Assembly: GCA_001938485.1 (NCBI GenBank)
Contig: MQRK01223612.1
Coordinates: forward strand, 1 to 60,866
Direction: 5' to 3'
DNA length: 60,866 bases
Source of the DNA: Girardia tigrina
Lineage: Eukaryota
Position 1 is the first letter of the stretch; the number at the start of each line of letters is the position of its first letter. This document shows positions 3,270 to 28,990 of this stretch, in pieces. The notes beneath the pieces are model-generated. The model had not been told where the DNA came from. It saw nothing but the letters and a program-made list of their open reading frames with translations, and ran no database searches. Position numbers and translations under genes: made by a program.

Positions 3270-5643
3270 CTACAAATTGAAGGGCTTTAATATTGTAATA
3301 TTAAAGAAAATTGCATGTTCTGTCTTAAGAAAGAAAATACTAATAAAACTTACCGCATTAAAATTTATATTTATGAAAAAAAGCTGNTNAAATTAGACNT
3401 AATAAAATTCGAAAAAATAAAAAAAACAATAATATTTAAACAAATTTCCTAACTATTTAAATTTAATAATTGTTGATCTGAAAAATAAATAGAAATGCAC
3501 TCGTATAAATTTTCACGAAGATTTGTTTTTATTTTTTCAATAAATTTGATTTTTATAATAGATTTTTTTTTAGAAAATTTTAAAAATTTGTTAAAATTTT
3601 AAAACCATTGCGGGCCGCAAAAAAGTAAGCAGCGGGCCGTGAGTTTGACATGCCTGTTGTAAATAATACACTAAATTAGTAATGGACATTTATTTAAAAT
3701 TAAAGTATTTGTAAATAAAAGAAACTAATAAATGAAGTTTTAAACAAATAGACCCAAAGTCATCATAATTTGACTTCATAATAAAATTAATAAATCAAAC
3801 CAGAGACTTTATTAATAGTCAATAACGGTTACCCCACCCATGGTGAACAAAAATAAGACAGTAAAATAAAATAAAATATTATAATTGTTACGTTCCATAT
3901 TTTGCACCTCAAACCCAGAACCCTTTCACACATTACATTACCCTGCGCGCACGAAAGTTTGTCAGAGTTGTGGGGATAGTCAAACTCGACTATCCCCGGT
4001 AGTTTTAAATGATTCCATGCACGCCGGACGCAGAATAGGGTGAGGGATCCTTGGTAAGGAATGCTTTCACCCGGGAGTCCCTTGCGATCCTTGAGAAACC
4101 TTGAGCAACCTTCTAAAACAAAATAGAAAATTAATTAGCTTAATTAGACTAATTAAAAACTTTACCTAAGATAATCCAAGCCAATTCACCCAACGAACGG
4201 AGAATTGTTTATCAGATAGATGGAGANCGGATACCGAAGATAAACAGTTCGAGGACCACATCCTGTAAGTTCGCGGCAAACAGGCCGGATGACCGCGAGC
4301 GCAAAACCCCGACAGGCGAGCTACAAGAAACAATGATAAACAAACTATTACCAGATTACCCTGACGCAGGATATCGCGAATCGGACGAATAAACAAATCA
4401 TTCCTAGCTCTCTGCCGCGCACGCAAGATGCCGAAATCTCAGACGATTTTTGTGTCTGACGAGGTATAAGTAACCGAACTGGTTTGCACATTGAGCAGAT
4501 AGCAATTTTTAATTTATTTTTCGTACAGCATTTTTAAAGAATTTGTATCAACCCACGATTAAAGCGAATTATTCTTGTTTAACTCAATTGACATCCTTTT
4601 GATCACAAACATTTATTTTTACGAAAATTTATTGTTAATTGTACGAAGAATTATTTGAGCCAATTTATCTCAAGAAAGCTTATTTGAACCAATCTCATGA
4701 AAGTTATTATACGAATTATACGAAGAATTATTTGGCAAAAATTTATGCGAATTTATATTTACGGAGCCGACGAAATTTAAGAATTCCTTATATATTATAC
4801 AATGTTATATTACATTATATTATATTATATTATATATTCCCCTGAACTTATCTAGATCGTTCCTGAGGTTTTCCGAGATCCCTGGCTCCGTCTGAGAACT
4901 CCTTGTAATCCTTCGAAATTCCTTTGAGGCTTCCTAAAATAAAACAAAAAGTTAGCAATTTTAATTAGTCTAAGTGACATTACCTCGATAATTTATAAAG
5001 TCCATCCACGCGAGAACTTCATAAATCACCATTGTTTATCGTGCCAAATTGCCGAAACGATAAACATCGTTGGTCCACGCGCCGACATAATCTAAAGTAA
5101 CAATCGGCATTGCCTTCCTCCTGTAAACAGGACGTTGTCCGAATCCAAAAACATAAACAGGACGCTTCGAGTCCCTGTAGGGTATAAATACCCGAAACGA
5201 CAAAAAAACACACAATTAAAATAATTAAAACAATTTATTATTATTGACATTAACAATTCATTGTTCGCACCACATTTTTAACGAAGTTGAAGTTAATTTG
5301 TATCAAGAGAAATATACGAAGAATTATTTGCCAAAAATTTATATTTACGGAGCCGACGAAATTTAAGAATTCTTTAAAGGTATACTCGCTGTTTATTGAA
5401 TAAATTTTTATTTCCTTTAATAAAATTCCCTTTTATATGTTCCTATTTATTATATTGTTTCCATAAATAATTGTTTTCGGTTCATTATTATTTTATTGTT
5501 GTCTCAATTAAATACTCGCTTTCCATGTGTTGTTGTTTTGTTATTGACGTATTTGATTAAAATATCTTATCACGATTGATTTTTCATCTCTACTAATTAC
5601 TGTTTTGCCATTAATATAATTGATTAAAATACCTAACTTCATT

Positions 5644-5793
5644 TGTCACGACCCTTTTGTTCATAACGGTTTTAAGTGCTCAAAGCCCCCAGTGGCTATT
5701 AGGGGTCAGCCACAACTCGATTTCAACTTATACTATTTTACAAACTGTTTTAATACTTATTTAATTACTAAGTTCATTTGTGGGTCGGACGCC
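5644..5793 (+). ncRNA. Family-A structured domain, partial (hairpin and pseudoknot)
   Basis: GTGGCT/AGCCAC is crossed with GGGT/ACTC at 5692-5718. Homology is lost after GGGTCGGACGCC. Confidence 0.6.
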
Positions 5794-8202
5794 TACACGA
5801 CTACACGACAATTAAATTAATAAAATTAGTAAACCAAACAAATAAATTATCTGTCACTAATATAAACTTTCAAATTCATTTCAAAACTTTCAAAAAAAAA
5901 TTTTTTTAAATCCAATTTCAAAATTCGTAACCCTAAATTTATTAAAAATTTCATAATAACATCGTCATTCCGAAGTAGGAATTTTTCAGCAGTATTATGT
6001 AAAAAAATTAATTAAACATCGAAATTTAAATAACGGAATTTGCAATAAATTTTCAAGCGTTCAAATTCTTAACAAAACTTTTGTTTAGTAAATTATAAAC
6101 TTCGCGTGAATAAAATTATCAAAGAATTGTAATTGAAATTATCGAAATCATCATACAATTCGAATTGCTTAATTTAATTTTAAAATTATATAGGCCCTAA
6201 TAATTAATTACGGAAAGGTCAAAACACCCTTAATAATATTCAAATCAGATAAAAATTACTGTTATTATTATTGTCGAAATTAAAGGTGAGAAAGTAAAAA
6301 AAAAATTTCAAAATTTATTTGTTTGAATAATCTCATTTCGACCTTTAATTCGCGGTATGAAATCAAACCTCCTCAAAAGTCATAATTATCAATCGAATTA
6401 TATCGCAATGATCGTCTTTCAAAGTTAACAAGAACGTTCACAGTTCCTAACTAGGGCCGGTAACTCTTACTATTTAATTTTCCTTTCGATAAATCTCGTT
6501 TTTTCATATCTAAGCTTTATATCTCTGTTTTATAAAATCCCATTACTATTTATTCACGAGTATAATAATAGTCCCTGTCTCTTACTATAACAAAACTATT
6601 CACAAAAGATAAACGTCAAAGGCCAATAAAATTAGAAATATAAAAAAATTTATTAAATTATTGATAAATGGTTAATATCTCGCAAACGGGGTAATCGTTA
6701 TTTCGATAATACAGGAATTGCTAGATCGCCCGTTGTGTGTGAATTGGCGGCTCCATTTCGTCGAGGAACGATATAACGCGCTCGCCCCCGATGAACGCCT
6801 CGAGAGAAATCAACACCACGTCGATAATCATTGGGACCAGGAGGCCCCCTTCACACTCTCGCGGCTCCGGCAATTGCAAATCGAGTTGGGGCATTTACGG
6901 CGAGGATTGATGGCGGTGGTGATGGTGCTAATTAATTACTTGTACGAAAAAGGTAATCTATTTCTGTAGTCGTGCGATTAATATTTAAGTAAAAATTCAT
7001 AAAAACACAAATCATAAATAAAATTCATATTAAGTCAGTAAATAGATACATAAATTAAAATTTACAGCTTTAACAAGAATTTCGGGTTTCGGAAACTCGG
7101 ATTCGGAGGAATGTCGTCGGTTTCTCTTCGCGTATCGTCGTGTAGAGGGAGTTCTCTTGACGCTTGGTTAAGTCGGAATCGGATGATCGTCCTGGCGCCG
7201 GAAGCTATCAGATTCTCGTCTCTTCGTCAAATGGGTCGTTCGTCGGTTATCTGTCGTCGCTCTGCGTCGGGTTCTGATATTCGTTTGGTTTTGGAATGAA
7301 TAACGCTCAGTAATAAGTTGTGCAAAATATTTTTGAAAAATGTGCCATTTGCGGCAGTATGGCTGTTGGATTTATAACAGTCATCATCTCACCTATCGGG
7401 GTGTGCTTTGTCGTGGCATCTTCTGATTCGCTCTTGTTAATAATTTCGGGCTCTCATTTGTCAGGACTGTCGTACCATACAGTGACTGCTTGTCACGCGG
7501 TTCTTTGTCACCGATGACTATTCATCGCGTGATGTTGTTTTTTCTTTGTGGGCCTGACTCATGGTAAGTTTTGTTTATTGTTCTTTGTCTTTCTTAATTG
7601 GCCTTTGTCCTTTTTCAATTAATTTATATATCTTTACAGGGGTATAACTTTTCAGGGGAATATCTCACAGCTTTGCCGATTTCGTTCAGGACCTTGTCAT
7701 TTTCGGGGCTACAAGTGGAGGGTCCGTTAACCTCGTAGTGTTAACGGATTGCCTTGGAAGTAACTTTATTAATTCTTGACCTCTTTTTAATTAATTAATT
7801 TTCTTTTTAAAGCTCTTAGTGCTTTTCTCAATCTTCCGGAGCACGACCATTTATTCTCAGGGATGTGTCTCACTCCACTCTACTTGGAGTGAACCATTTG
7901 TTCGTTTTCTCTTATCAGGTATGTTTTTAACCCGTTTATTTACTTTCTTGACTGATTGTTTTTAGTCCTATCTCGGCGTACAACATTCCTCTGGGCGATC
8001 GGGAGTATCTCAAACTTAATTTGTAATATTATGGTTTCTAAATATATGTATTATTCTTGTGATTTTCGCTTTTTCTCTCTTTGTTAATTGTTTTATAGTT
8101 GATAGTTGATATTGGACCGTAGTGTTATAATTAAATAGTGTTCTTTCTTTTATTTTCTCTTCTTATTTTTATAATTCTAATTTCAATTTCTAGACCGCAA
8201 CA
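5644..8202 (+). mobile_element. Family-A element (TGTCACG..GACCGCAACA), nested
   Basis: TSD CATT (5640-5643, 8203-8206). Both ends and the spliced 3' part are homologous to 20056-22875. Confidence 0.85.
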
Positions 8203-9669
8203 CATTATTGTTATCTCAATTCAAATATTCCGATAATATGATGAAGCATGTAGAGTGGGAAGGTCTTCTCGAGATAACGACCGGAGAGTGCGGGGACCGG
8301 GATTGAGAGTACAGTTCACCTCTTATCCAAGGGATCGAGCGAGAGGGTCCTTGGATTCGGACGTGTAAGCGAGTCGTGAAACCGTTGTAAATAATTGTAA
8401 ATAACTTTAAAACGATGACTACGATTAATTTAATTATTTTTTTTTATTTTCATTTATTTTTATTTTTCCTTTTGTTGATATTTTGGTATTTCCTTTAAAA
8501 GTTGAAAAAAATTCCAAATTAATTATTCTAACGCCGTTTATAACTATTGTTATACTTTCTGTTTTACATTTGAATTTCTTCTAATAATTTGGGCTATTTT
8601 AACAAATTTTTTTCGGAACATTCTCTAACCAATTGTTATCTTTCGCCAATTTGGTTGGGAGCACCTGGTACATTTGCATCTTGACTTATTTTTTATTTTA
8701 CTAATTTTATTAGCCGTATCGTTTCGTAATTAATGTGATTTATTTGTTAGTTAACTGTCGTAAATGTCTAACCTTTCTTTGCTTTAAAAATTGTTCTGAG
8801 TAGATTTCCATCTGATAAATTTTAGTAATAAATTTTGTAAGGTTTGTAATAATTTTTGTAAGATGCTGTAAGATAAAGGCTTACGAAATTGCAAGTAATC
8901 GTAGTGAAGTGATGTGAATCATGATGCGTTACCTTCGAAGTGTTATACAGATCAGTTTGATTTCTTTGTTTCGTGATTAATATTGAGCAGTTAGAGTTAA
9001 AAAATTAAAATTGTAAAGTGAGATCTCGATTGAAACCATAGAGTCCAGAGCACGTTTACAAACTCAAAGTTTAAGCAGTGAAGTCGAATAAATGGCCAAA
9101 TGTTAATGTCAGCGAAATATGGAAATCAGACGAATATAAACTATTAGAAGTTCTTCGAGTTATCAATCAAGTCCCAGTCTACAATCAATTAAATCTTTAA
9201 TTAAAATCTTGAATCGAATAAAGTCGAAAATCGAAAAATGGTGTAAGAGTAAATTCGAGTAATTTGTGAATGTGAGAGGTTAATGATCAAGAGGACGAAT
9301 AAATTAGATAACAGATAGAATACCGAAAGTGAGGAAATGTTATCAGTGTAAACTCATGGTCCGAATTCAACGTGTTACGACTGTCAGCTCGGGTTTAGGA
9401 GAGTATTGTAAAGTGAGACCTGAGCTAAATAATGCGAGTGATTACGTATCGACAGATGAAAACATGTTACATCCTATTTCGATATGGAGGATAAACCAGT
9501 TTCGATTTCTTTGAGTTGAAGCAGGAATTGATATCTTGGTTTAAAATTCTACAGCTCGAAATGAAAAGAAAAGAGAAAAATATTTATTAACGATCGATCG
9601 ATGTTATGCAAATTAAGGTTCTATTCTTAAAAAAAATTAAACCAAAAATTTAACACATAATATATACGA

Positions 9670-10050
9670 TGTCGTGTTCCCCTTCAAAACAACATTATTG
9701 ATGACTCTGAGCCCCCATCCGTTTTCCATTAGAGTTCAACGGCAACTCTATCAAACTAAGCTAATTACATCTCAACGGGAACAGACACGACTCCTTTGCC
9801 TACATCAACGAATTGTGCAGACATTAGAGCGCCTTCGGGTCCTTAACCAGTAACGAGGATGGCCCGACTGGTGACTGAGCTTCTAGAGGGGATGATAATA
9901 ATTCTATACTACGACTATAACCATACCAACGCACTAATACTCGAAACTACAGGAAACGAAGAGAGCCTCAAGAAAGAAAATGACGATCGGTCCGCGTGTC
10001 CCTTGCATGCTGCAGCCGGTCGGCATCACCCTCCCAGGTTCTTCGCCCCA
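9670..10050 (+). ncRNA. Family-A structured domain, full
   Basis: Pseudoknot CCGTT/AACGG plus AGAGTT/AACTCT (9719-9749), GCC-TTCG-GGT (9831-9840), stem ACCAGT/ACTGGT, GGGGATGAT, and a long stem at 9985-10021. Confidence 0.7.
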
Positions 10051-10841
10051 TAAAAGAATTTAAATAAATTCAAATTCATCATAGGTTGTTTATTAGATTA
10101 GTTATTCAATATTGATGTCTCACAGAAAATAAATAGTGGAGTTACGTTAATTTCGGATTGTCAAGGCAAATTAATTTTAACGAGTATTAAAAAAAGTTAC
10201 TTAACACTTCTTATTGATTTTAAATAGATTCATTTGTCACTTTCATGTTACTTAAGATGAATACAAAGTTTAATGAAGTAGCGATAGAAGCCTTGAGATT
10301 CAATATAACACATAAATTTGATAATGAGCAAAATGAAAAGGATCACAAGTCACTTTTAATATTAAATTAAGAGTTTTGATTCACTTGAGTCTTGATTCAC
10401 TTTTCGATACTTTTACATAGGGTTCTCCACTTCTTATAGTTGTGACATGCAAGTTTAGCCATCCTTTCTTATACAATGTAAAATAATTCGGTTCGAAAGT
10501 TTATTATGTCAAAATAATTAAGATGTATAACAACTTTTGTTATTAATTTTCTTTGCAAATTCTTTTTTATATTATTTCAGTGATACGGAAATTTGTTTCA
10601 GTCGTTGAAATATTTTAAGTACACAGAACATAATCAGGAATGAAAATGTGTACACCTCTTCCAAGGCTCCCCAAGCTCACACTCTAATGACTACGATCAC
10701 CAGATTAGGATTGGTGATACTATTGATTTGTTATCGTAGTTCGTTGATCTGTTTATATTTAAATAACAGACTTCCTAAACATCAAACTGGTCACTTATCA
10801 TTCAATAAACAAAAACGGAATATCCGCACTTGACAATGTTG

Positions 10842-11336
10842 TCAATTCATATTTTCATAGCAAGTTGATGGCAACGAATTCGATTCGGGAACAAAATGAA
10901 CGTCTAATTCACTATTACTTAAATATGTTATTGGGTTTGTGTTTTGTGGATTGATTAAAGGTGTTTGTTCAGTGTTGTTAGTCTGTGAAACTGGAGAAAT
11001 ACTATCAACACTGTCTGAGTCATCATCACGACCGGGAATTTTAATTTTATTCTTACAAATCGGACAATTTCGTTTTTGTTTCAGCAACCAAGGATCGGTA
11101 CAAGAAGAATGGTACGCGTGGTTGCAGGGCAATATCCTTAATTTATCTCCCTCTTTAAAGTCATCAAGACAAATCGTACAAGTTTCAAAAGGGTCTTGGC
11201 CTTTTACAAATTTTTTTTTCATATTAAAGAATTTATTTAGATGATCGAAATATAACATAAAGTCCATTATAATATATCGGCATTGAGCAGTAATAATAAG
11301 ACAAAAACACAAAAAAAGAATAAAACTCAGTATCAA
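10842..11336 (-). CDS. TM plus RING-H2 E3 ligase, RNF13/RNF167 (Godzilla)-like, intronless, no PA domain; start codon uncertain, possibly a pseudogene
   Basis: CTICLDDFKEGDKLRILPCNHAYHSSCTDPWLLKQKRNCPICK has all eight ligands and follows a hydrophobic helix. An acidic/Ser-rich tail contains TEQTPLI. Confidence 0.85.
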   Translation of the reverse strand: MILSFILFLCFCLIITAQCRYIIMDFMLYFDHLNKFFNMKKKFVKGQDPFETCTICLDDFKEGDKLRILPCNHAYHSSCTDPWLLKQKRNCPICKNKIKIPGRDDDSDSVDSISPVSQTNNTEQTPLINPQNTNPITYLSNSELDVHFVPESNSLPSTCYENMN

Positions 11337-12029
11337 AGCACAAGCAAATAACCGAATAAAAAAATAAAAATTAATTAAAACATGAATACATACTTCATAA
11401 CAATAGATTTTCTCTGACTCAGCTAATAGGTTTTCTTTGACTCGGCTCTTCCTAACAATAGATTCTCTCTGTATCGGTTTTGTTCAATTAATAACCAAGA
11501 TTTGAGGAATAATGAAAATTCAACAAATTTTCTCTCTAACAAAAAAAAAATTGCGTGCGGCCTTATATACTTCCATCCGAATCGTTCAAATGTTCACGCA
11601 GGATGTGCGTGATCAACAGGATCATGAGGTAATTTTTTTGTTTTGTCATTCACATATTTATTAAATTCACGCAAGATATTCGTGAATAAACCATCTGGAA
11701 TGTCGACTAGAATTCCAAATGTCAGATGTAAGTACATATTAATTAATTCATATTTTTAATTATCTTTAATTTTCTAGCTTGGCCCCAAGCAGCGAATTGG
11801 AATCCCGACCCGATTCGACGCCCCGACAAGCTGAGAGTCATTTAACACTACATGAGGATAGTCTAGTTTGACTATCCTCAAACACTCTGAACACGGGCTC
11901 TCATGCGTAAGGGGTGTCGGGTTTGGGACAGGGTTTATATGCAGCTACCTCAGGAAAATGAAAGGGTTTGTGTAATTATATCTCTGTCGTAACAACGAGT
12001 TAAACCTAATTACAAGCAATAATCGAGTA

Positions 12030-12420
12030 TCCGGACGAAGGGTTTTGAGAAGCGGTGCGGCAGCCCATAGCATGCACAGAGGCACGTGGGCTGACCATCA
12101 CTTGTTTCTTCGAAGTGTCCTCGCCAGATATAAATAAATAAAATCGACCTTGACGAAATCGAAGAAAATAAAATCAAAAATCATCCCCTCCAGAAACTGA
12201 GTTACCAGTCGGGTCATCCTCGTTACTGGTCAAGAACCCAAAGGTGCTCTAATGTTTACACAACTTGTTGATGTAAGCAAAGGAGGCGCGTCTGCTCCCC
12301 AAGTGTAGTGAGTATCTATGTAGAGAAATAGTGATTGTTAGAATGATTGCCGTTGAACTCTAAGAAAACGAATGGTGGCTCAGAGCCATCATTAATGTTG
12401 TTTTGAAGGGGAGCACGACA
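12030..12420 (-). ncRNA. Family-A structured domain, full
   Basis: Reverse-complement homolog of 9670-10050 with all blocks in the same order. Confidence 0.7.
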
Positions 12421-13747
12421 TAATAATAATAAACAAATTAACCAAATAAACTTTTATTGATATTCAGCAATAATCACATCATTCAAAGTAATTAAAGACA
12501 AAAATAAAATAAGAATAAAAAATGAAATTAAATTAAATACAATAAAATAGTAATAATCGATCCATACCTTTAAAGTAGAATTAATAGAATTAAAATAACA
12601 GTAACATGATCGTGAATTCCAACCGTACTGGATCGACGTACATGGTGCGCATACGCACCGATCAGTATTTATTGTACTGACCGACGGTTGCACCGGTTCA
12701 CTGACCGGTGTGCGCGATCGCGATCGATCGTCTCCGTACCCCGGCTTCAAATGGTGTGTCGTCGGCATACCGGTAAGTATATTATATTATTATATGATTT
12801 ATTGATTTTTGCTTCAGCTAACGCTTCTCACAACCATCACTGTGCTGATCGATCAATTTAATGTATATATTTTTTTAATTTTATTAAGAATAGGTACGGA
12901 TCAAATTGCAACATTTCGTTTCGATTGAAACACACTAATTATTACGAGAATCTGTTTTGGAAAGGAATCGCAACATTTCATCAGCAAGTATACACTGTTT
13001 GATTTTATAATTGTTATTTTATACTTTATATTTTACTATTTTAACGTCTATCTGTACTTAGTGTAATAAAATTAATCCATTTTGGATGACCTAATGGTAT
13101 TTATTTACTTATTTCGGACGATGACGCTCACTCTAATATTTAAAAACGCAGTAATGAAGGGAAATTTTAACACCATTTTGTGGTGTACAAGAGTCTTGAA
13201 GGTACTTGGTAGAGTTCGAGTAGACGACGGTAGGGCAACAATTGCGAGAGAGAGTGCGACATAAAGAAGGAGACATAATTTGTACTCCTTATCTGTCAAC
13301 AGAGTAGTAAATTAATAAATGTGTTATAAGTAATTAATAAATGTGTAATAAGTAAATAAATGAAGTAGCAAATGAATGAATCCTCAACCATGAATATTTT
13401 GATTATAATAGCAATTGATTAGGGTTTGACTTAGCATTTGGTTTAATGGTTGATTTAATTAATTTTTTGTTAAGCTTAATTTTAATCGATTTGATAGTAT
13501 TTGATTTATTATAGTAACATTTAGTCGAGAATATTATTTGATATTTTTAGATAGAAATACTTTTAATAGAAATCATATATGGTTATATTATTTAAATAGA
13601 AAGGTTTCAGATAATTCGAAATAATTATTTAAAAGATTCCGTTTCCTTTCAATACACGATTCTGAACAATGTTTAATTGCAACAATTAGATAAACAGATT
13701 TTATATTAATAAAAATAAAAATGTATTGATAAAAATGTTTTTGTAAA

Positions 13748-14268: not shown

Positions 14269-14934
14269 TTAATAAATATAAGTCATAAGTAAGAGTAAAT
14301 CAACATGGGCATAGTGAAACCAAATTGTTATTGATGTAAGTTACCATTGCGAATTAAATAAAATAAAACAGTAAAGTATAGAATGGCATTTATATAGTAG
14401 GAATCGTCAATTAACCTTATGAATTCGCAAAATGACGTCGAATACGAAATCGAACGTGAATATTCAAGTATCACTCTAAAAATCATTTCGTCCAAAATTG
14501 TTAGTAAATTTGATTGTTAAAAAATTATTTGAATAAAACATGATCAAGATAAAATGCAGTATTGATACTAGTTTTGTGAACAAATAGCGTCGTCATATAA
14601 AGTAATTGTCATTCTTACGAGGTAGAACAATAAAAGCGAAATGAAATTAATTACTGGAATAATGACATTAATAGAATTAAAAATAAGTCATGACAAAATA
14701 AAAATTAAGTGGAGTGAAAAAAAATAAATTTTTTTCTGTAAAGGTATAATGAATTCTTTAAAGAGTAGTATGGAGATCCGAAGTCAATGATCCGAGAAAC
14801 CTTTTAGCAATGACGAAGGTCATTCCAAACCACCGCCATTCATTTTTGAAGGCTCTCCTCGGTATATAGACTGCACAGCAAAGTTTACCAGTTGGACTCA
14901 AATGTATATATATATGACGAAATAAATTTATAAA

Positions 14935-15100
14935 CATACCCCGTGGATGCTGAGACCACTAGTCGGGCAATACCCGTTACTGGGTAGGACCCGTAGGCGC
15001 TCCGAAACCTACACTACCAGTTAGATGAGCGTGAAAGAGGAGCGTCCGCTCACCTTGCAGAAGTAAAAGTATAGAGTAATAGCGGGTTTCAGTTCCCCGT
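14935..15100 (-). ncRNA. Family-A structured domain, partial
   Basis: The minus strand has a GGTGAGC..GCTCATC stem, GCC-TACG-GGT and CGGGT-ATT-GCCCG. It appears truncated within the pseudoknot. Confidence 0.6.
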
Positions 15101-16029: not shown

Positions 16030-16689
16030 GCAATCTTCACTATTATTAAAACTTCTTAGCAACGTTCATTTAGTCTATGTATATTTATGTATATAATTAT
16101 TCTTTTATTATTCCAATTAATCATTTCATTTAATTAACTGCTTTAACTGCTTTTTTTAACCATTTCGTCTCGTTCATTAACCGGTGTAATTAAGTCTCAT
16201 TTTTAGTGTCACCAATATAATATTTTGTTAATGATCTTTCTTAATATATGTAAGTCAAACTTCGTGTTCCAACTTTCATATGTACAAATCGGTGGTTTGT
16301 TCGAAGCGGTTTAGACCAAACTTATCCCTACTATTACAATAATTAACCATTCCGACGTTAAAGCCGCATTGAGGAGATCACGGATAAAAAAATGATAAAA
16401 CGACACATACCAAAATCGGAAAAATAAAATGATGTGAATCTAAAATCAGAAATGCATAAAATAATGTGAACCTAAACTCAGATCGAAAGAGACGAGAATG
16501 ATGAGGTCGATGGGGATATGAATTTTTACGGGAGCAGAAGTCGCTCAACTAATGAGAACATAAGTTCGAATGAACTCGCACAAAGTCATTGTGTGTAACT
16601 ATACCAATAGATTGGCTAATAAGAGATGTATTTATATAACGTCGTGAGAGAGATAAAAGATTCAAATATTAAAGAATATGGGTGACTAG

Positions 16690-17073
16690 GACGAAGAACC
16701 TTCTGGAGGTGACGCAGGCCGACTGTAGCATGCAATGGGCACGCGGTCGACCGGCGTTGTTTCCTGACGTCTCTCTCCGTCCGATTTAATTGATAAACTA
16801 ACACAACAAAATACTTAGTTATAGGGTGAAACAATATCAACCCATTTGGACATTGAGACTACCAGTCGGGCCATACCTGTTACTAATTCGAACCCGAAGG
16901 CGCTCCGAAGCACACACAACTTGTTGATGTGCGCGGAAGAGACGCGTCTATTCCCTCAAACAGTGAATAATTATCGAAAGGAATAAGTAGTGCATAAGAG
17001 TTGCCGTTGAATTCTACAAACGGATGGGGGCTCTAAGCTAACAAAAATGTTGCCGAGAGGAGGGAAGACGACA
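16690..17073 (-). ncRNA. Family-A structured domain, full; far end of the element not found
   Basis: TGTCGTC terminus at 17073, followed by the pseudoknot, GCC-TTCG-GGT and the long stem GGTCGAC..GTCGGCC. Confidence 0.7.
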
Positions 17074-17591: not shown

Positions 17592-17669
17592 TCTATTCAC
17601 TCAATTGACAATAATAATTAGTATTAATAATATTATAAATCTTATTTTAATAATTACTAAATCTTAAAT

Positions 17670-18364: not shown

Positions 18365-20055
18365 TTAATAAACTTCGTTTTGATTTTTGTAATTCAACAT
18401 CACTTTTTTCTCATACGATTTATTATACCTCTATCTGTAAACCCTGGTAGGTAAGCATTCGCTCGGCGAACAATCGTAATCCTTGATGACTGGATGTTCA
18501 AAGTTAACAATGTTAATTATGACAACCCTGAAATATTGAGATAACTATGTTTACTTTATTTTTCCCCTTTAATCTTGTTTTGTCGAATATCTCTACATTT
18601 GTCGCAAACGAAATAGGCATCACCACATTCAAACAATGCATAATTATTTACCAGAAACATTCTTAAACCACATTACATCCACATTATTATTAAAAACATA
18701 TTTAACCTTTATTTAATTTAATAAATTTTCTTAAACTTAAAATTTTTATTCCTTTGAAATTTTATTTAATTATTTATTTTACTTAATTATTTATTCTTCT
18801 ATTCTGTCAATCCAATAATTTTTCACTCCAATTACATAATTATAAAGAATGGAATAAAAAAAATCCTCATCGCTTTAGGAACCTTTACAATTTAGTATTA
18901 ATTGAAACTACACAGTCCCTTGTGGCTGTCGAGTCTGTAATACATATTGACAGACGTACTTCATTGAAGAGAAATCATGCCCAGTAGAAGAACAAGTGTT
19001 GTTTTGAGATTAGTAGTAATATAATTAAATATAGAAGATGGAAGAAAGTTCGAGGCTAAACACTCCATGCATCTAATCTCAGTGTGATGCGCAGAATAAC
19101 ATCTGCAAGTTAGGGAAACATATTGTGGTATGTTAAAACCAACAAATCAGAAGTAATTTGTTCTAATAGTAGACGTTACAACAACCATTTGTAAATAATT
19201 AATTAAAAACTGAATATTTCTCAAAAATAGGTCTATCAACTAGCACCTGTTACTAGATTTAAATGAATCAGGATTAAGATCCATGAATTCCTCGATTTAT
19301 CAATTGAAAAATTATAGGTGTGAAAACAAATGCTGCGGTAATTTACACCAAAAATTTTTTTTGTTTTTTAGATTTTTTTCTATACGAGATGAATATTTCA
19401 TTACTGCTCAAAAACATCGATTGAAACTAATTGAAAAGCGAAAGCGATAGTCATACTTCATTTTTAGAAATATATTCTTCAAAGTTCAAATATTTTCTCT
19501 CATTGGACTTTCGCATTTTTCTTTATTCTTGAGGTGCTCCGATCAATCAATCGACAAAAAAAACAATAAAAAAACTGACTTTTGTTTAATTAAATGAAAC
19601 ACTAATTTGTGAACTAAATTTAAATTTTGTAATTTTTCGAATAAATAAATGTTTCAAATGAAATCGAATTTTTAATCTTTGTTTCGTCGTTTGATCGATC
19701 CACAACTGAAACCGTTCTGTTCGGACCGACCGACACCTCACTCGAGGTGTCGATACACGGACGAAACACAAATCAATCGACCGATCATCATACAAGACGG
19801 GACCGATAGCCAAACGCAGGGCGACACAAAACAGGGAATCACCACGAGTCGGTCACGGGACCGACATCAAATGACGTGGTCACTGGACCCGATCGGTACA
19901 CAGCCGCCGTTGAACCGATACGCTATTATTTCGAGCACCGAGTCCAGGAACATTAAAGAGATGCAGGTCTCCATAGCTTGATACGTTCGTTCAACAGATT
20001 GTGGATTTCTTTTGTTAAAATGGATTTATAGAAGGATTCTATTGTTTCTGAATCA

Positions 20056-20310
20056 TGTCACGACTCTCTTGAGTTAGAACATTTTTAAAAGCTCTTGAGC
20101 CCCCAGTGGTTATAAAGGGTCAACCACAACCCAATGTCGCTTTATGAGTTCATTTATTTATTCCCTTGAATGTGTTTGCACCTAAATGGGTCGGATGCCT
20201 CTTCTCACCTGACATCTGACTAGTAGTGCCAAGCTCGAAGGGCCTGCGGGTTCAGTTTAAAGATAGGACGGGCTGTGGGCCCCTCTGTCTCGTGTTGCTC
20301 GGGGATGATT
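20056..20310 (+). ncRNA. Family-A structured domain
   Basis: GTGGTT/AACCAC plus GGGT/ACCC (20106-20132), GCC-TGCG-GGT (20242-20251), AGATAG/CTGTCT enclosing GGGC/GCCC, and GGGGATGAT. Confidence 0.7.
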
Positions 20311-21664
20311 TCGTGCTAGGTAACATTTATATTCTTAGTGAATGCGTCTCATGCTGGTTATAACTACTGTGTTGTATGTGCCATCTGTAACATTTACTGT
20401 GGGTGCCGCTCATGCCACGTTTGTCGGTGTGTCTAAAACTATGGAGATATCGTCATTAATATTATTAATATTATTATCATTGTATACATAACAGTCTGCG
20501 CATCAACAACTAGTATCAACGACGGGTTTACGGTATTCACTTTACACCTCATTTACTAATTATTATAATATCATTATTGTATGTTGCTATGTAACCGCAT
20601 ATTGTCATTTTATTCTTATTAATTCTAAGAGTAATCATTTGTACACTTTCTATCGACAACAAATAACGCGTTTATATTTACGAAAAGACTTTTTGCTTTA
20701 TTTATATATTATTTATATATACATAAAATCACTCCTCTAATCACAATATTCAGTGTTCGATGTTGTGCGGATTTATTTACTCAGAACGGATTTTCATATT
20801 TCAGTTTGTTTAATACCAGGTAGAATCATACCAATATAATAATTCATCATACTATTAACCTATCTAATATTCAAATACGAGCTCGCTAGGCTTAATTTCT
20901 AAAACTCAGTCATTTAATATTAGTAATTCTTCGTCTCAAATATCTACAACGATTCATTTATGACTGGGCTCGTTTTATTGATTGATTACTTACAACATAC
21001 AGACATATCTCGATTTCAGGTCCCTGCGGACCGATGTATCATTACCATCAGAACGAAACCATTCTCTCTCTGTAAGACTTCACTGCCACTGGAGTTACTA
21101 ATTTGAGCAACAAGTTTGTAGCGTGCTACATTTGACGATCGGATTTCTTATCTTTCTAATGGATAAACGAGGATAACAACGACGGCTGGAACGAAAATTA
21201 ACTTCCTATTAACTTCCTAAAAGAGAAATTATCACTTAAACACTCGGATTATTTACAAATAGACAATAAAAAAGTTTGTATATATATATATATATATATA
21301 TGTATACAAAAAAAATAAAAAAAATAAAAAAACAATATTTTAAAAAATTTAAATTACAGAAAGATTTTTTAATACAAAGATATTTATAAGATATATATAT
21401 TTTTTTGCGATATTTTTCGCAATTGATAAGAAAAGGAAAAATTCTATTAAATCCGAACCGGTCACAAAGAAACTGAAACTTGCCAATGAAAAAATCGATA
21501 TATATATATATTATATATATAATATATATATACCAATGTTCTCGTTGGTATTGATTCGAAAGGATTGTGTCTCAATATGGGATTATATATATAATTATAT
21601 ATATATATATATATNNNNNNNNNNNNNNNNNNNNNNNNNNNNNNNNNNNNNNNNNNNNNNNNNN

Positions 21665-21704
<40 letters not shown>

Positions 21705-22875
21705 CAGGTTAATAATTCAACATTGTTACATAAAGATAATAATTACAAGAACGATATCGATACGGCCCGGAGGATAGTTCTGTGCCAATCAGTTCCCTAC
21801 GGTTGTATATTTCACCTGTCGACATGTCAGTAAACGGAAGTGCCTATCTCGGGAATTAGGATTGCGCCCTCTTGATTAGCTCGTTGCTCGCTGCGCTCGT
21901 CTTTCGTCTCGTTGTCAGATGCTGCTAACAACTTGTCTATTTGGTTCTGTCGAATATTTCGCTCTGTCAAAATTTTGCTGATTGGCGTTCTTTTATCTGT
22001 CAGTTGTCTAGAATTTTCGAAATGATTTTTGATTGTCGTCTCTAGTCTACAAATTACCGTCATATTTATAACAACATTTCTTGTATATTGTTGTGTCTTT
22101 TCGTCGTGGAACTATTTCATTGGCGCAAATTGTTGTTTCTGGAATTTCATTTGTCGGGGTCTATACAACATGCCGATTTCTGATAGTGGTTCTGTCATTC
22201 TCAGAACACATGATCGGTATTATTCATTGATAAATCGTGCTGATTAATCGCATGATGGTTATTTTTGGATTTACGGTTGACTCACGGTAATTCTTAATTA
22301 TTTTTTCTATTTTAATTGGTTTTTCTTTATATTTCAGGGTCTTATACCTCTGCTCAGGAAGATACCAGTGTCTCGCGGGCTTCATTTAGGGACTCGGCTT
22401 GCGAAGATATTTCAGGAGAGGGTCGGATGACCTTCCATCTTTACTGTGAAGTTCGGTAAGGAATTTTATTATTTTTTGGTTTCGTTTTAATTAACTTTTT
22501 CTTTCTTAAGGCTTACAACTTTTCTCGGGGATATGTGATCTTCAGAGGTGTTATCTCTATGAACTCATCTAACGATATTCTATCTAGGGGAAAATATTCG
22601 TTCGATTTCTTTTATCAGGTGGGTTTCTATTCATCGTTTTCTATTTTCTTTATGTCGTGTTTTAGCCTTTATGATATTCTCACTGCTCGATCGGACTGCG
22701 AGGGGATCAATAACAATTCCGGACAACTTCGTTAACCTCTGCATGTAATGTGATACGGCGGTTAAATATATGTATTAAAGTAATGTCTTACTTTCTTGTC
22801 CTTCTTTGTGCTTGCTGAATGTTATGTTTGGTAACCTGCATATGTGTGTACTAAAATAGTTTTTTGACCGCAACA
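20056..22875 (+). mobile_element. Family-A element (TGTCACG..GACCGCAACA)
   Basis: TSD ATCA (20052-20055, 22876-22879). Same termini and intron positions as 5644-8202. Contains an N gap. Confidence 0.85.
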
Positions 22876-24021
22876 ATCACTAGAAATTTCTGATTGATTC
22901 AAATTTGCTTTTTGTTATTAGATTTTTTTGATTTTTTTCGACAAAAAGCAAAATGAAATAATTTATTGAATTAGAATTAGAAAGATGTTTTGTCGTCATC
23001 TTTATCGAAATTATATACGACACTACGGAAATCTTTTAGAGTTATTAACTCGAGTTTATTGACTAGTCATCAATACTCGGCGTAGATAATCGTAGCTGTT
23101 TGTTGTCACTCTGGATCGTTTCAGATTATCCTCGTCTGGTTGGTCCGATATTCCACTTGGAAACCGCCTAGATTCCTTGTCGTCGTGTGGATTATCGTTC
23201 ATCCTTATTGTTGTGCATCTCACTTTGAATTTTTAACTTCTACATAACTATATATATTATTACTTTATTTATATTATATATTTATATTATGTATTATTAT
23301 ATTGTTATATTATGTATTTATATTATCTATTTATTTTTATGAATTTATTTTATGTATTATTATGTATGTAATTATTATTATTATTATTATTATATACATA
23401 ACTACCATACGTAGTTATGTAGAAATTAAAAAATTAAATTTTGAATTTAAAATTGGTGATCAATAAAATGATCATTGATTTTAATCAGAAATTATATTAC
23501 TTACCTCAAATTAAATTTTTAATTGCCGTAAAAAAAATCAATATTTTTATTAATTAATTATTACGGCTAGAATTATATACAAATTGCCACTGACAACTTA
23601 TGTATTGAGATTTCCTGTTTTTTACGAATTCGTTTCAGTATCTCAACTTTAAAAAGACACAAAAGAAAAGGTCCCGAAACTATTTATTCAATATTTTAAT
23701 TCAAAGTATCAAAAAACACTGCTCAAATTATATTTACGGATATTCCGAGTATTCGAAAGAATAATTGAAGAGAAAATTATCCTGACAATTTGTAGTCAAT
23801 TTCTGGTTGTAACGAACAATTCTGACAGTTTGCAGTCAACTTTATTTTTTTATTGTGATGAACGATTTACAACCCCTACAGTTTGAGTATTTTAGTAGGG
23901 GTTTTTTTGGTTGTGAGTCATACCCAGTTGATTGTTAATCAAGGTGTTACAAATAAATTCTATTGATCCCCTCTCTTAATATTATATAATTATAGTGGTA
24001 ATATAACCCAACTATAATAAC

Positions 24022-25400
24022 TGGTGTCAGAAGTTGGATATTGCATTCTAATAGCTCCCAATTAAAACCCTTATTTAATTATTTCTTTTTATTCACGTTG
24101 TTTGCCATTATGACTACTAAGGTGAAACTGAAAAATAAACAGGCTGATTTTATAGAACACCGGTTCAATAATAAGAACAAAATTTATTTTAAAGTCCCAG
24201 ATTTTAAATTAGACTGTAATGGTTCTCCTATACCTTGGTTAGAAACATGTATTAACCTCTTTAATTTTAATGATATTTTCGATAACAATGTTATATTAGT
24301 TCTTATATTATTAATAATCTACCACCGAATATCCTCTTCAAATTTGGAGATCAACTTCAACAATTTTCTAAAGCTACAAATCCTCTCAATAACCTACGCG
24401 AAATTTTTCAGAATTCTTTTCCATGGGACCAAGATCTGATTTTAAATGAATATTTCCATGATCATATTTTAGGTGATAAGAAACCCTATATTTTTCTCTC
24501 TGAATTAATTGATAAATTAAAAGATGAGCAGGGCCTAGTAAATAACTGCCTGGTAAAATTTTTCTTCTACAGACCACTACCCTGTAATATCAAACACTTA
24601 GCCAGAAACTAGTAAATTGGCTGACCAATTATATCAAAGTAATTCCTATAATGTCAACGCCATTCATAAACTTAAAATAAACGAAGAAAATGAAAGTGTG
24701 ACAATCAAGACCCTTTTAAATAAAATCGAATCTTTAAATGAGGAACTCTGTTCCCTAAAAGGAATCATAAAAGACCAGGAAATCTTCATAAAAAACTTAA
24801 AAAACAACCAACAGCAAAGGATTACAAAAATATCAACAACTTTCAATACAACAGAAATATATATTTTAATTCTTTTGACAGAAATTATTCTGACAGTTCA
24901 AAGAATTATAATGTGAATTTATGTTTCTACCATAATGAGTACGGAAATTCAACTTTTCGTTGTATCAAACCATGCAATTTTAATAATAATAGTTTAAACC
25001 CAGGGAGTCACTTGGATTAACACCCTTTCCGAGTGACGTTAATAATATTTAGAGTATCTGTAAATAATTTACCTCATTCATTTTTATTTGACTCCGGTTC
25101 AGTCGATTCTGTTTTACCTCGTTCGTTCGATGTTCAGCGTTCACACAATAATTCTAGTCTATATGCAGCAAACGGTTCTTCTATTGAAACTTTCGGCATG
25201 CGTAAATTAAAGATAGTTCTGGGAAAGGATATTTTCTGGTGGAATTTTATAGTTCCTAATGTACGACAGCCGATTTTCTTAGTAATTTTGGACTTCTAGT
25301 AGATTGTAAAAATCATTCTCTAATTTTTAAAGATAAAATATATTACGGTATCGGAGAGCCTAATGTTTGTTCTATTAAAAAAACTTTTGTTCAATACATT
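24022..25400 (+). pseudogene. Ty3/Gypsy gag-protease remnant with tRNA-Leu-type PBS
   Basis: PBS TGGTGTCAGAAGTTGGAT at 24022-24039, gag motif LCFYHNEYG..CIKPCNF, and aspartic protease FLFDSGSVDSVLP..LYAANGSSIETFG. Confidence 0.88.
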
Positions 25401-25640
25401 TTAACTGAAATTCCTAAAACAAAGGTGACTACTTTTTACAATTCTATTTTCTTTAAAAAAAATTCTAAAAATAAATCAATTACTAAAACATCAATCAACA
25501 AAAAACATTTTTGTACGTGAGATTATTCCGGTTAATAGTTTAACAAATACATTTTTTTTCACAGAAGGTAGATTTGTCTGTCCAAACCGATATTCATAAT
25601 ATATCATATATTTATGAATATTTATAAATTAATTTAATAA

Positions 25641-25849
25641 TACTGTTAATTTTAAAAATAACGGCAAATGTTTTTTGAGAATTAGAAGACATTTTAAAAT
25701 ATATTGAATAACGGAAAGGATCAGCACATTCGAACGTAGATATGCTCTCTGGACGAATGTGAAACATATGTAAAATGCTAAATGCAACACAAGTATTCAA
25801 AAACAGGGAATGTAAAGACCAGAAAATTTAATTCTATCGCATCAGAAAT
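25641..25849 (+). repeat. Duplicate (about 205 bp) of 27233-27442, the end of Gypsy RNase H
   Basis: Near-identical sequence encoding YIE.RKGSAHSNVD.LS. Confidence 0.85.
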
Positions 25850-26304
25850 AATGCCAAAACATCGGTGATTTGACCTTCGTTACATCTAAGAACAGATATT
25901 TTAATTCTTTTGAAATTAAGCCTTCAATTTGAACACTAATATTTTCTTTAGTAATAAATGAGTTTCATTTTATTTCTAGATACAATTTTAATGTCAGTTT
26001 TTGAATTGTAGAATATGTTTTTATTTTTGAAATTTTCAAAGATGTTTGCAAAACTCTAATTTATAACATTTTCCTAGTCCTAGGGTACTCTTGTAAAGAT
26101 TGATTTTAAATGAGAGTCAAAACGTTTTACTTGAACTCATTGAGATACAAATCTTCTAATGACTCAATATAAATACGGAAGAGATCAATGAGATAAAAGC
26201 GTAAACAGAGTCTCTCAGAATCACCAACCAGAACATGGTACGACTTGTTATTGATTTTGATTGATCATATATTTATGAATATTTATAAATTAATTTATTA
26301 ATAC

Positions 26305-27235
26305 TTGGACGGGATTCCGTGTCTCCACGTTGTTATTTTTTTAATCAATAGTTTCGCTTGAATTTTATAATTATTTAAACTCGTAACGATCTTTTTATCG
26401 TTTATTTTGGAATTTGTCAGCAATATCATCATTATATTCAGCGCATCCAGCGCGTCTCCTTCAATATATTCGGCTTGCAACAACGCGATATAATTTTCCC
26501 ATTTATTACCAATTACTTTTCCGCAAGTGAAAAATCGTATCGGAATAATCATTCTTTTGTTGTCAATCACAAATGAAATTTATAAAATTGCCAAAATCAA
26601 CAAAAAGACAAATTTTTCCCCTTTTATTTTTAATTGAAACAGTTTTTAATAATTGATCACACTTCGCTTGAAATTGGAAACCTTTTTTTCAAATTAGAAT
26701 TGTTATTGAAAAACTTTTATTTTTTAGAGACAAAGACTTGATTCAAAAAATTGACAAACTTTTTTTTAAATTGTGAAAACAATTCACACAAAAAAACAAA
26801 GCTCCTCACACACACACTCACAAACAGACATTCACCAATCATTATTTACATATCAAACATACATACACTCTGCATTCATACATTTCATTCAATCAAAACT
26901 ACCTTACATAATTACTTACCTCAATCAATTACATAATTACATTTGAGGCTCACCATTAATTAATTCGTATAAAGAATCGTTTATACCGGTTTCGTTTATG
27001 AATTTATAAATCAATGATTTACATAGATGTCTGTTATTTAAAATAGTACTGATACAGATTATTTAAATTAATTATTATTATTTTTTTTATTTTAATTATT
27101 AATTTGTTAATTTTAATTAATTTATTTAATTATTTTTAATTTATTAATTTAATTGTTTAATTATATATGTTTTATTTATAAATTTCTGAAACTGACAAAA
27201 ATGTTCGGTTAAATCAGCAATTCTCCGCTCCAATA
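26305..27235 (-). mobile_element. Family-B element carrying an RPB10 fragment
   Basis: Terminus T(A)TTGGAGCGGAGAATTG, TGGTGAGCCTCA at 26944-26955, a CA-rich leader, and a 24-mer at 26305-26328, all shared with 55326-56524. Confidence 0.7.
26433..26552 (-). pseudogene. POLR2L: RNA polymerase subunit RPB10 N-terminal 40 aa, fused in frame to unrelated sequence
   Basis: MIIPIRFFTCGKVIGNKWENYIALLQAEYIEGDALDAL. The first Cys is replaced by Phe and the RYCCRRM half is missing. Confidence 0.92.
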
Positions 27236-28260
27236 CTGTTAATTTTAAAAATAACGGCAAATGTTTTTTTTGAAAATTAGAAGACATTTTAAAATATATT
27301 GAGTACCGGAAAGGATCAGCACATTCGAACGTAGATATCCTCTCTGAACGAGTGTAAAACATGTGTAAAATGCTAAATGCAACACAAGTATTCAAAAACA
27401 GGGAATGTAAGGACCAGAAAATTTAATTCTATCGCATCAGAAAAAGTTTCAGTCACCTCAAAAAAGTTTAGTTGTCCGACGAGGAAATTAAAAGAAATGT
27501 TCATGAGATACATCAGTTGTTGACTCACACAGGAGCAAAGAATATAGAAAATCTACGGAGCAAAGAATATTCAAAGAAAATCCAACAAGTCATTCAGAGA
27601 TGTGTAGCGTGTCAAAAAGTTAAAGTATAACGAAATAAAAAAAAAGATGTGAAATTACAAGTAACTGATATTTTCAAAAGTAATTTTTATAGACATGTTG
27701 GCCGTTGACACAGAGAGTTGGAAATAAGATATATATATATATATATATACTAAATGTATAAAAACATTTCAAATACAATCCAGAATCGTGCATATTGATA
27801 AATTGTTGTCTGTTGATTAAAACTCTTCTTTAAAATCAGAAGTTTTAAATACATATCATTTACTGCTATATCGAAACATAACGAAGCAACTGTTCAGAAA
27901 ACTATTCTCAATAACTGGATTCTACGTTTTGGATTTTCAAGAATTCATGTTGATTGTTGGAAGGTGTTCGATTTAAAAACATTGAAGTAGATTGCTACAA
28001 GCTTATATGCAATGTTATGCTAAGTCCGTGCCATCAAAATTATAATGGAAAGATAGAACGACAATTCCAGACTATGATTGTCATGATGAGTACAACGTTT
28101 TACGATAGAAGAAAAACAGATTGGGTAGAAATTCTGCCGAAAATTGAGTAAAATTTGAATTTAACTACATAAAAATTAATTGAAGAGTCTAGCTGAAGTT
28201 TTCTTTAGTAAAAAGATCTGCAGGGAAAAATGGTACCCTTCAGGATATACAAACAGCATA
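27236..28260 (+). pseudogene. Ty3/Gypsy pol remnant (RNase H end, integrase)
   Basis: HQLLTHTG..CVACQKVK zinc finger, NWILRFG, HQNYNGKIERQFQT and DWVEILPKIE, with many stops. Confidence 0.85.
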
Positions 28261-28749
28261 TTCAAGAACGATGATACGGTTACAACAGATAGGAAGTTTT
28301 AAAAGAAGATAATGTATGATGATGACTTAAAATTACCAAATCATTTGCTTCATTATTTTTTAACGTTTCTGAGTTTTGCATTTCAGCCGAAATTATAAAA
28401 ATATCCCAACAATAAAGAATAGTCAACTCTTTAGTAGATGTAGTATCAGACTGAGTAATATTTTGTTTTTCTAATGAATCGCAGATGCAGCGAAAATTTA
28501 TTGATGCGAAAAAATATTGATATTTATCTTAGTTAAAATAATTATTTCAGAGTATTAGTAGGATATTATAATATAACTATATAGATGATTGATATAGAAT
28601 TACGACAGAATCGTATCACAGTCGCCTCGTGTAAATAAGTTTTTCCTGTGTAAATAAGTTTGAGTCTACAGTTTAGTTCCTGAACAGAGAGCCAATGCGT
28701 TCAGAAGTTTTGAGTAAATCAATTTGAGAACTGGAATTAACCTAATTAC

Positions 28750-28990
28750 ATCATCCCCGAACGATATTGAGCCGGCTGGGCGGCACATAGCCCGTCCTGG
28801 ATTAATTGAACCTGAAGGCGAACCAAACTCTTCACTATTTATAGATGAGGAGCGAGGGAAACGTGTCCGCCCACCAAATTTGTAAAACGGACTTACACAG
28901 AGATGTCATATACTGGGTACAGGTTAAACCCTTAAAAACCTCTGGGACTCAGAGTCGACAATAATGTCAACACCTGAGGTGGCCGTGACA
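28750..28990 (-). ncRNA. Family-A structured domain; far end of the element not found
   Basis: TGTCACG terminus at 28990, GACTC-T-GAGTC, AGGTT/AACCT plus GGGT/ACCC, GCC-TTCA-GGT, and GGGGATGAT. Confidence 0.7.

Follow-up and report, generated by a model that had tools for sequence, protein, structure and literature searches.

A 60,866-nucleotide (nt) stretch of the Girardia tigrina genome (contig MQRK01223612.1 of assembly GCA_001938485.1, positions 1 to 60,866 of the forward strand; hereafter the window) harbours a family of non-coding mobile elements of 2.3-3.6 kb that end in TG..CA, are flanked by exact 4-bp target-site duplications (TSDs), keep a folded domain at one end and carry intron-like intervals near the other. 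Most likely the family is a long variant of an ordinary kind of element, the long terminal repeat (LTR) of a retrotransposon, in which one end has an unusually clear selected fold and the opposite end a curious antisense unit that is predicted to be spliced. Below, the 'A' end is the terminus starting TGTTACG or TGTTGCG, and the 'B' end is the terminus finishing ..CACGACA or ..CGTGACA on the same strand. Our leading but still tentative interpretation, to which we give slightly less than an even chance, takes the seven copies to be solo LTRs and pieces of LTRs from a single lineage of LTR retrotransposons that is old and diversified and whose sense strand runs from A to B; when both orientations are taken together, an origin as solo LTRs becomes somewhat more probable than its opposite.

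Complete elements and partial copies

The family was mapped by BLASTN and nhmmer self-comparison of the window together with direct reading of the sequence, and the ends and TSDs were checked by script. This yielded four complete elements (E1 to E4) and three partial copies (P3 to P5):

3886-12420, plus strand (A to B): E1, complete element of subfamily I, TSD TAAT at 3882-3885 and 12421-12424; its own pieces are 3886-5643, 8207-9669 and 11999-12420 (sum 3643 nt)
5644-8202, minus strand: E3, complete element of subfamily II, 2559 nt, TSD CATT; the B end comes first on the plus strand
9670-11994, minus strand: E2, complete element of subfamily I, 2325 nt, TSD ACGA
14795-15092, plus strand: P5, partial B block without the terminal ~60 nt
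16640-17073, plus strand: P3, B block with its terminus intact (..GACGACA); A end and TSD not found
20056-22875, minus strand: E4, complete element of subfamily II, TSD ATCA; contains an assembly gap at 21615-21664
28598-28990, plus strand: P4, with a diverged B block at 28708-28990 that ends ..CGTGACA; without TSD

E2 and E3 are both nested inside E1, whose three own pieces were compared separately and never joined. The longest exact flanking duplication is exactly 4 bp in each of the four complete elements, and all 32 duplication bases are still intact. The empirical chance of a 4-mer match between two places in this sequence is 0.007, and that of all four about 2e-9, so that the insertions were real events, made by an enzyme that cuts its target with a 4-bp stagger. 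The duplications fall within the 4-6 bp that characterize LTRs in four of four complete copies, and the short TG..CA inverted repeat, another LTR hallmark, is present in all of them: read inward, the B terminus is TGTCGTG or TGTCACG, and the short inverted repeats of LTRs have the form TGTTRNR..YNYAACA (PMC3601003). Between the two ends of E2, E3 and E4 we found no inverted repeats beyond 7-9 nt, and within these three elements no internal or terminal direct repeats. Nor do the elements contain a reverse transcriptase (RT), integrase or transposase, as a Pfam search with all their longer open reading frames (ORFs) returned a RING domain only.

E4 is argued to be a single insertion because matching ATCA duplications lie on both sides of its assembly gap. 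The gap (21615-21664, Ns) is flanked on both sides by a (TA)n run, and only a spurious TA-repeat frame crosses it; as it lies inside this run, the element's length of 2820 nt is an estimate only. To the left of the gap homology between E3 and E4 covers only the first 150 nt of the element, and it resumes at 21670. A weak match to the mir-1277 precursor in TA-rich simple sequence of E4 (21481-21548, minus strand; 32 bits against a gathering score of 81, E 0.017) is most likely due to chance.

A model-made reading of this DNA, based on its letters and ORFs (the sequence-only reading), had described four elements with TG..CA ends and four different exact 4-bp TSDs, sizes of 2.3-3.6 kb, the lack of a recognizable RT, integrase or transposase, three further partial copies and middles that are hard to align. 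All of these points held up, and so did its number of copies and its coordinates, with the summed pieces of E1 (3643 nt) agreeing with the proposed sizes and with the partial copies P5, P3 and P4 ending at 15092, 17073 and 28990.

Conservation is confined to the element ends

Two subfamilies can be distinguished, the first comprising E1, E2, P3 and P5, with P4 as a distant member, and the second E3 and E4. Copies of subfamily I are alignable with one another only over the B block (~400 nt) and over ~130 nt close to the A end; E3 and E4 can be aligned over the first 150 nt of the B end and over ~1 kb adjoining the A end (~61-72% identity); and between the subfamilies only the B terminus aligns. 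The B end is thus conserved over 150-430 nt, and homology detected by nhmmer is confined to the ends, apart from the ~1 kb common to E3 and E4. A covariance profile of the B terminus matched the six terminus-bearing copies exactly and nothing else in the window, where copies lie in both orientations and are 60-80% identical. As evolution after insertion is neutral and the TSD bases are intact, this pattern reflects what active lineages had to keep.

An exact 10-mer of the A terminus of E2 recurs at 28600-28609, upstream of the P4 B block, and judging from this match P4 may be a short (~393 nt) family member. Within E1, a module with a TATA motif and an intron-like interval is duplicated in tandem (4080-4175 resembles 4901-4992, and 4713-4843 resembles 5309-5431, at 69-73% identity), which points to one way in which the variable middle grows. 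The B-block homology of E1, P3 and P4 starts 390-440 nt from the terminus, beside a ..ATA..ACG.. motif (11995-12000, 16634-16645 and 28598-28609), and E2 is inserted in E1 at exactly this B-block border, which could be a coincidence or mark a hot spot of recombination or insertion. A family-specific motif used to scan metagenome contigs gave four GC-rich matches, and in bacterial and archaeal genome contigs it gave three matches, all bacterial; none of the matches from either scan was homologous.

A covarying fold at the B end

The terminal domain of the B end was located in six copies:

5644-5811, plus strand: conserved folded terminal domain of E3
9670-9825, plus strand: the same domain in E2
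12258-12420, minus strand: in E1
16914-17073, minus strand: in P3
20056-20229, plus strand: in E4
28832-28990, minus strand: in P4

The fold consists of three helices, a closing stem formed between the terminal 12-13 nt of the element and a site located 110-140 nt further in and, enclosed by it, a 3-bp hairpin and a 5-bp hairpin, the latter passing through four pair types. RNAalifold predicted conserved helices on either strand for the four subfamily I B blocks. Over 300 nt of these blocks, the z-score against column shuffles was -7.1 on the strand that reads A first and -4.4 on the strand that reads B first, and over the terminal 165 nt of six copies it was -13.9 on the B-first and -13.3 on the A-first strand. 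In a profile-based alignment across both subfamilies, standard pairs filled 93.3% of cells as opposed to 81.5% in shuffles (0 of 500 reaching the observed value), nine of 20 pairs had changed on both sides (again reached by none of 500 shuffles), and sliding the partners by 1-3 columns lowered pairing to 34-42%. Because the sequences are related, the compensatory changes amount to perhaps nine or ten independent events and not more. Covariation supports a selected fold, as judged from these alignments, and bears out both the conserved stems and the selection on them that the sequence-only reading had put forward. The pairs do not tell the strand, and instead of an RNA fold they could reflect paired protein-binding sites in DNA.

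The 8-mer AGCCCCCA occurs four times in the window (5684-5691, 9710-9717, 17025-17032 and 20098-20105), with 0.2 expected. It always lies 41-50 nt from a B terminus, is unpaired in the fold and begins with TGG on the A-first strand, as primer-binding sites do. Searching the A and B blocks against Rfam, the hammerhead and other self-cleaving ribozymes included, gave no match up to an E-value of 1.

A hairpin and intron-like intervals at the A end

The A ends carry a hairpin in E1 and E2, and intron-like GT..AG intervals in all four complete elements:

3913-4058, plus strand: E1, long imperfect hairpin around an 11-bp stem
11795-11940, minus strand: E2, the corresponding hairpin
4113-4165 and 4934-4983, minus strand: E1, intron-like intervals
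6953-7067, 7564-7639, 7760-7812 and 7919-7965, plus strand: E3, intron-like intervals
11629-11675 and 11728-11777, plus strand: E2, intron-like intervals
22287-22337, 22456-22510 and 22619-22665, plus strand: E4, intron-like intervals, equivalents of three of those in E3 (7564-7639, 7760-7812 and 7919-7965)

The hairpins of E1 and E2 differ by one compensatory change from G-C to A-T and have z-scores of -1.8 and -5.1, respectively; in E3 and E4 the A ends lack a hairpin of this kind and are no more structured than shuffles. The intervals, predicted from sequence features after a crude regular-expression scan for introns had been dropped as too insensitive, are short and AT-rich, start with GT and finish with a pyrimidine run and AG. 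The B-first strand, running from B end to A end, carries all 12, and the distance from the last 3' splice-like site to the A terminus is 227, 217, 237 and 210 nt in E1, E2, E3 and E4. When E3 is aligned with E4, three of the GT..AG intervals coincide in position, and the splice-like sites, along with parts of the intervals, are more conserved than the sequence separating one interval from the next, consistent with the earlier proposal that intron positions are conserved. TATA-like motifs lie upstream of the intervals on the B-first strand at no single fixed place; they include a 10-nt motif common to E3 and E4 and a palindromic TATATA near 11563 in E2. The exon-like stretches yielded no convincing reading frame or Pfam match, the pieces of E3 and E4 being searched one by one.

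A RING-domain fragment carried by E2

The variable middle of E2 holds the only recognizable cargo of the family:

10842-11336, minus strand: RING-H2 cargo ORF of E2, 141 amino acids (aa) from the ATG at 11267, intron-less

Its RING-H2 domain was detected at a Pfam E-value of 3e-15, and the nearest solved structure is that of RNF13 (3.7e-23). The coding strand of the ORF is the A-first one, and the intron-like intervals occupy the other. It is matched by two database ORFs of unknown origin, over residues 41-75 in one case and 74-163 in the other; these relatives, P0002 and P0001, end or begin where the E2 ORF stays continuous, and then run into unrelated residues. On the simplest reading of these matches, the relatives' genomic copies would carry an intron at the break point, and the cargo would then have been copied from a spliced mRNA. 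Exact look-ups retrieved no record for either the RING ORF or P0001. The description of the elements as gene-bearing was not sustained, since nothing shows functional gene content and what can be recognized is this RNF13-like RING fragment.

Solo LTRs and competing interpretations

Were the copies solo LTRs read from A to B, a DDE (retroviral-type) integrase would have inserted them, generating the TG..CA ends and 4-bp duplications, and they would have piled up by nesting in a transposon-rich region. The first ~200 nt from the A end would form the start of U3, and the long middle, unalignable between copies, would be U3 enlarged by tandem duplication and uptake of foreign sequence. The last 150-430 nt would represent R and U5, kept among lineages on the grounds that the fold and the terminal integrase site would be needed for replication, with the closing stem placed like the U5 inverted-repeat (U5-IR) stem of retroviruses beside the primer site. 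U3 would also accommodate an antisense, TATA-led unit with one to three short introns, whose last exon would run out through the U3 start; being antisense to the genomic RNA, these introns would survive reverse transcription. The RNF13-like piece of E2, sense and intron-less, would stem from a host mRNA, already spliced, that was incorporated in the course of reverse transcription.

A variable part followed by a conserved end of 150-430 nt matches the observation that R and U5 are more conserved than U3 in LTRs (PMC3601003) and so supports solo LTRs with A-to-B sense. The sequence-only reading had found the architecture unrecognizable; read in the opposite direction, it is this usual pattern. 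Four weak but independent hints point to the same orientation: the 300-nt block folds better on the A-first strand, the cargo is sense and intron-less, all intron-like intervals are antisense and would hence survive an RNA intermediate, and P4 follows, at a distance of ~300 nt, an integrase-like remnant of like orientation (described below). A spliced end and a cargo had both been noted earlier, and both are present, the spliced end as predicted from sequence features; what had not been recognized is that they lie on opposite strands, with the cargo intron-less, an arrangement that fits an RNA intermediate whose sense strand is the one opposite to the introns.

Several observations weigh against this interpretation. 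Within the window no two copies form a direct pair that encloses gag-pol, and none of the element ends is adjoined by a primer-binding site or polypurine tract. Lengths of 2.3-3.6 kb are far above those usual for animal LTRs. No canonical AATAAA is present, an AT-rich hexamer and a G/T-rich run ~25-35 nt from the B end being only suggestive. The terminal 165 nt fold equally well on both strands, as pairing of protein-binding sites in DNA would allow, and the intron of the parent RING gene is deduced from two database ORFs of unknown origin. Finally, the remnant near P4 rests on sub-threshold Pfam matches, and upstream of its gag-like part there is no matching 5' copy.

The copies might instead be solo LTRs with the sense running from B to A, in which case U3 would start with the folded block, the LTR promoter would correspond to the TATA motifs located 430-830 nt from the A end, and R-U5, the leader, to the intron-bearing stretch. 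The TATA-like motifs upstream of the intervals on the B-first strand, the near-constant last exon (210-237 nt) and the terminal 165 nt, which fold marginally better on the B-first strand with 93% of cells paired, all accord with such an orientation. Yet introns in sense orientation must then have remained unspliced in all lineages, the cargo, which has no intron, would lie antisense, the start of U3 would be conserved and R-U5 less so, the reverse of the usual pattern (PMC3601003), and P4 with the integrase-like remnant points the other way. We consider B-to-A sense rather improbable.

Unlikely as well, but deserving somewhat more credence, is the idea of LTR-less, non-autonomous elements mobilized in the form of DNA by a Ginger-like transposase of the integrase type whose gene lies elsewhere. 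The unlike ends would then be transposase-binding regions, the closing stem an inverted, co-varying second copy of the terminal binding site, and the promoters, introns and retrogene would simply have been carried along as DNA. TGTNR-type ends with a 4-bp duplication are those of Ginger1 and Ginger2, the latter preferring AT-rich targets (PMC2836005); non-autonomous DNA transposons typically combine conserved ends with middles that vary freely and bear cargo; introns and promoters have been kept here, the fold of the terminal domain is equal on both strands and all four complete copies stand alone. Set against this, Ginger1, Ginger2 and GingerRoot have terminal inverted repeats (TIRs) of 40-270 bp while the ends here share 7-9 nt only, GingerRoot makes 6-bp duplications, the window encodes no integrase-type transposase, and the division of intron-like intervals and intron-less cargo between the strands would have to be a coincidence.

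We hold it to be quite improbable that the family is a new stand-alone, non-autonomous retroelement without LTRs, an RNA copy of which would be inserted by the borrowed integrase of a retrotransposon, the folded end acting as a signal for replication or packaging and the spliced unit being a non-coding passenger gene. Such an element would account for selection on the B-end fold, the lack of internal terminal repeats, the intron-less cargo with antisense introns, and the conserved 8-mer 41-50 nt from the B terminus with its TGG start on the A-first strand. Retroviral-type reverse transcription, however, is known to rebuild the ends by strand transfer, giving terminal repeats that are absent here, and whatever lies upstream of an internal promoter would disappear with every cycle; moreover, solo LTRs explain the same facts without a new mechanism. 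Local segmental duplication or chance similarity, finally, for which one could invoke the clustering of all copies within 25 kb, is next to impossible in view of four different exact duplications at homologous termini (~2e-9), the precise nesting of E2 and E3 in E1, and the occurrence in both orientations of copies that are 60-80% identical. Together with readings that we have not thought of, it accounts for the small remainder of the probability.

We find it rather improbable that the units are complete in themselves, forming an LTR-less, non-coding mobile class inserted by a retroviral-type integrase. If they were, their lineages would keep a ~150-nt folded domain, one integrase site per end and a small spliced non-coding unit, with the middles swapped freely, copies of host mRNA included. 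The sequence-only reading had offered two alternatives, solo LTRs of giant size and non-autonomous units that carry a selected fold together with cargo, and both stay in contention, with the covariation lending support to the selected fold itself.

Comparison with known systems

Solo LTRs of Ty3/Gypsy (Metaviridae) or BEL/Pao elements resemble the family in having TG..CA imperfect inverted heptamers and 4-bp TSDs, in being non-coding, in the succession of a variable and a conserved part and in being nested in repeat-rich DNA. They differ from it in that the units described here measure 2.3-3.6 kb and have an intron-bearing, unit-like stretch and, in one copy, a host gene fragment, and in that a paired copy, primer site or polypurine tract is missing from the window. 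BEL/Pao and other LTR groups also give 4-6 bp duplications. A Ty3/Gypsy-type integrase had been deduced from the TG..CA ends and the 4-bp TSD; insertion by an enzyme of the DDE integrase type is upheld, but not the assignment to Ty3/Gypsy specifically, because Ginger elements produce 4 bp too (PMC2836005).

Ginger1 and Ginger2 have 4-bp TSDs and TGTNR ends, and Ginger2 favours AT-rich targets (PMC2836005); GingerRoot makes 6-bp duplications and carries gene fragments (PMC6839031), and the TIRs of Ginger1, Ginger2/Tdd and GingerRoot span 40-270 bp (PMC2836005, PMC6839031). The TGTNR termini and 4-bp duplications of the family match those of Ginger1 and Ginger2 and not those of GingerRoot (6 bp). 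Membership in any of the three was rejected, as no inverted repeat joins the ends of E2, E3 and E4, which are alike over 7-9 nt.

Plant Ogre/Tat elements have multi-kb LTRs of the Gypsy type, paired around gag-pol, and their known intron lies in the internal region and not in the LTR. Compared by description only, they and the family described here are alike in the multi-kb length of the LTR, putative here, and differ in pairing and in the place of the intron. LARD and TRIM elements are non-coding, have integrase-type ends and consist of two LTRs around a non-coding core, and conserved RNA structure has been proposed for LARD; membership was rejected on account of the lack of terminal direct repeats in E2, E3 and E4. 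Retrozymes and Penelope-like elements are mobile non-coding units with a hammerhead ribozyme, and a ribozyme-bearing retroelement of this sort was discarded since the A and B blocks gave no Rfam match even at an E-value of 1. Helitrons produce no target duplication and have 5'-TC..CTRR-3' ends, and they were dismissed because a 4-bp duplication is present here and the ends are TG..CA.

In the U5-IR stem, the last nucleotides of U5 pair with an upstream U5 segment, directly beside the primer site. The closing stem of the B end is similarly placed, and it is known here as a covarying sequence alone. A U5-IR stem at the 5' end of retroviral genomes is mentioned in PMC3601003.

Should the elements be LTRs, they would be among the longest in an animal genome, and U3 could then be seen to expand to several kb, through tandem duplications and the uptake of spliced host mRNA, with selection still maintaining a terminal fold of ~150 nt. 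A covarying stem that includes the very last nucleotides of the element would in that case be a candidate RNA element with a part in priming or strand transfer during reverse transcription. If no pairs of them exist anywhere in the genome, the elements would represent an undescribed type of mobile element with retroviral-type insertion and with neither LTRs nor inverted repeats. In either case, the outward-facing intron-bearing unit at one end, as predicted, could put promoters and splice sites beside host genes.

A decayed gag-pol-like remnant upstream of P4

The stretch preceding P4 contains retroelement-like remains:

24041-28302, plus strand: decayed gag/protease/integrase-like remnant of an LTR retroelement, from sub-threshold Pfam matches; membership in the family is not implied

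The gag-, protease- and integrase-like matches are all sub-threshold and colinear in order, with one weak link to the integrase core. All three genes are broken, at least five stops or frameshifts are present and foreign DNA has been inserted, and in the remnant no RT or RNase H part is recognizable. Searches of PDB and of a representative library with pieces of the remnant returned weak matches only and no solved relative, and the remnant is too decayed for placement in a clade. P4, ~300 nt downstream and in the same A-first orientation, occupies the position of a 3' LTR.

Inside the remnant, the first 40 residues of an ORF at 26298-26570 (minus strand) match RNA polymerase subunit N/RPB10 (Pfam 9e-14). 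The ORF lies between 212-nt direct repeats (25639-25848 and 27232-27443, 95% identical) and may be a piece of a host gene carried by another inserted element.

Setting of the family in the window

The window is AT-rich (GC ~0.2-0.36) and dense in transposon debris, which includes, besides the decayed gag-pol-like stretch, an ORF for a Spin-doc zinc finger and an ORF of a kind widespread in animals and resembling that of a transposon. ARAGORN found no transfer RNA genes in the window, and no Rfam family reached its gathering score there. Two further assembly gaps of 50 Ns are flanked by near-identical direct repeats, the one at 2902-2951 by 2585-2901 and 2952-3268 (98% over 317 nt) and the one at 49670-49719 by 49555-49669 and 49720-49834 (100% over 115 nt); these repeats look like duplications made by the assembler rather than biology. 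The Spin-doc-type ORF (2883-3269, minus strand; Pfam 2e-9) spans one of the duplicated gap edges.

A tandem repeat at 43595-47727, with ~2.5 copies, 82-97% identical, of a unit of ~1.63 kb, lies where the window is most AT-rich. Direct repeats at 31992-32589 and 34634-35240, 2.64 kb apart and conserved at 88% over a core of ~400 nt, could be the two ends of another small element; their alignment shows no TG..CA ends. A 383-aa ORF without a Pfam domain (37726-38877, plus strand) has 322 relatives at E <= 1e-5, the named ones coming from insects, Hydra, Daphnia, a slug, a leech, bryozoans and rotifers at 40-61% identity and some being annotated as C2H2-domain proteins, and it looks like the protein of a widespread, unclassified animal transposon.

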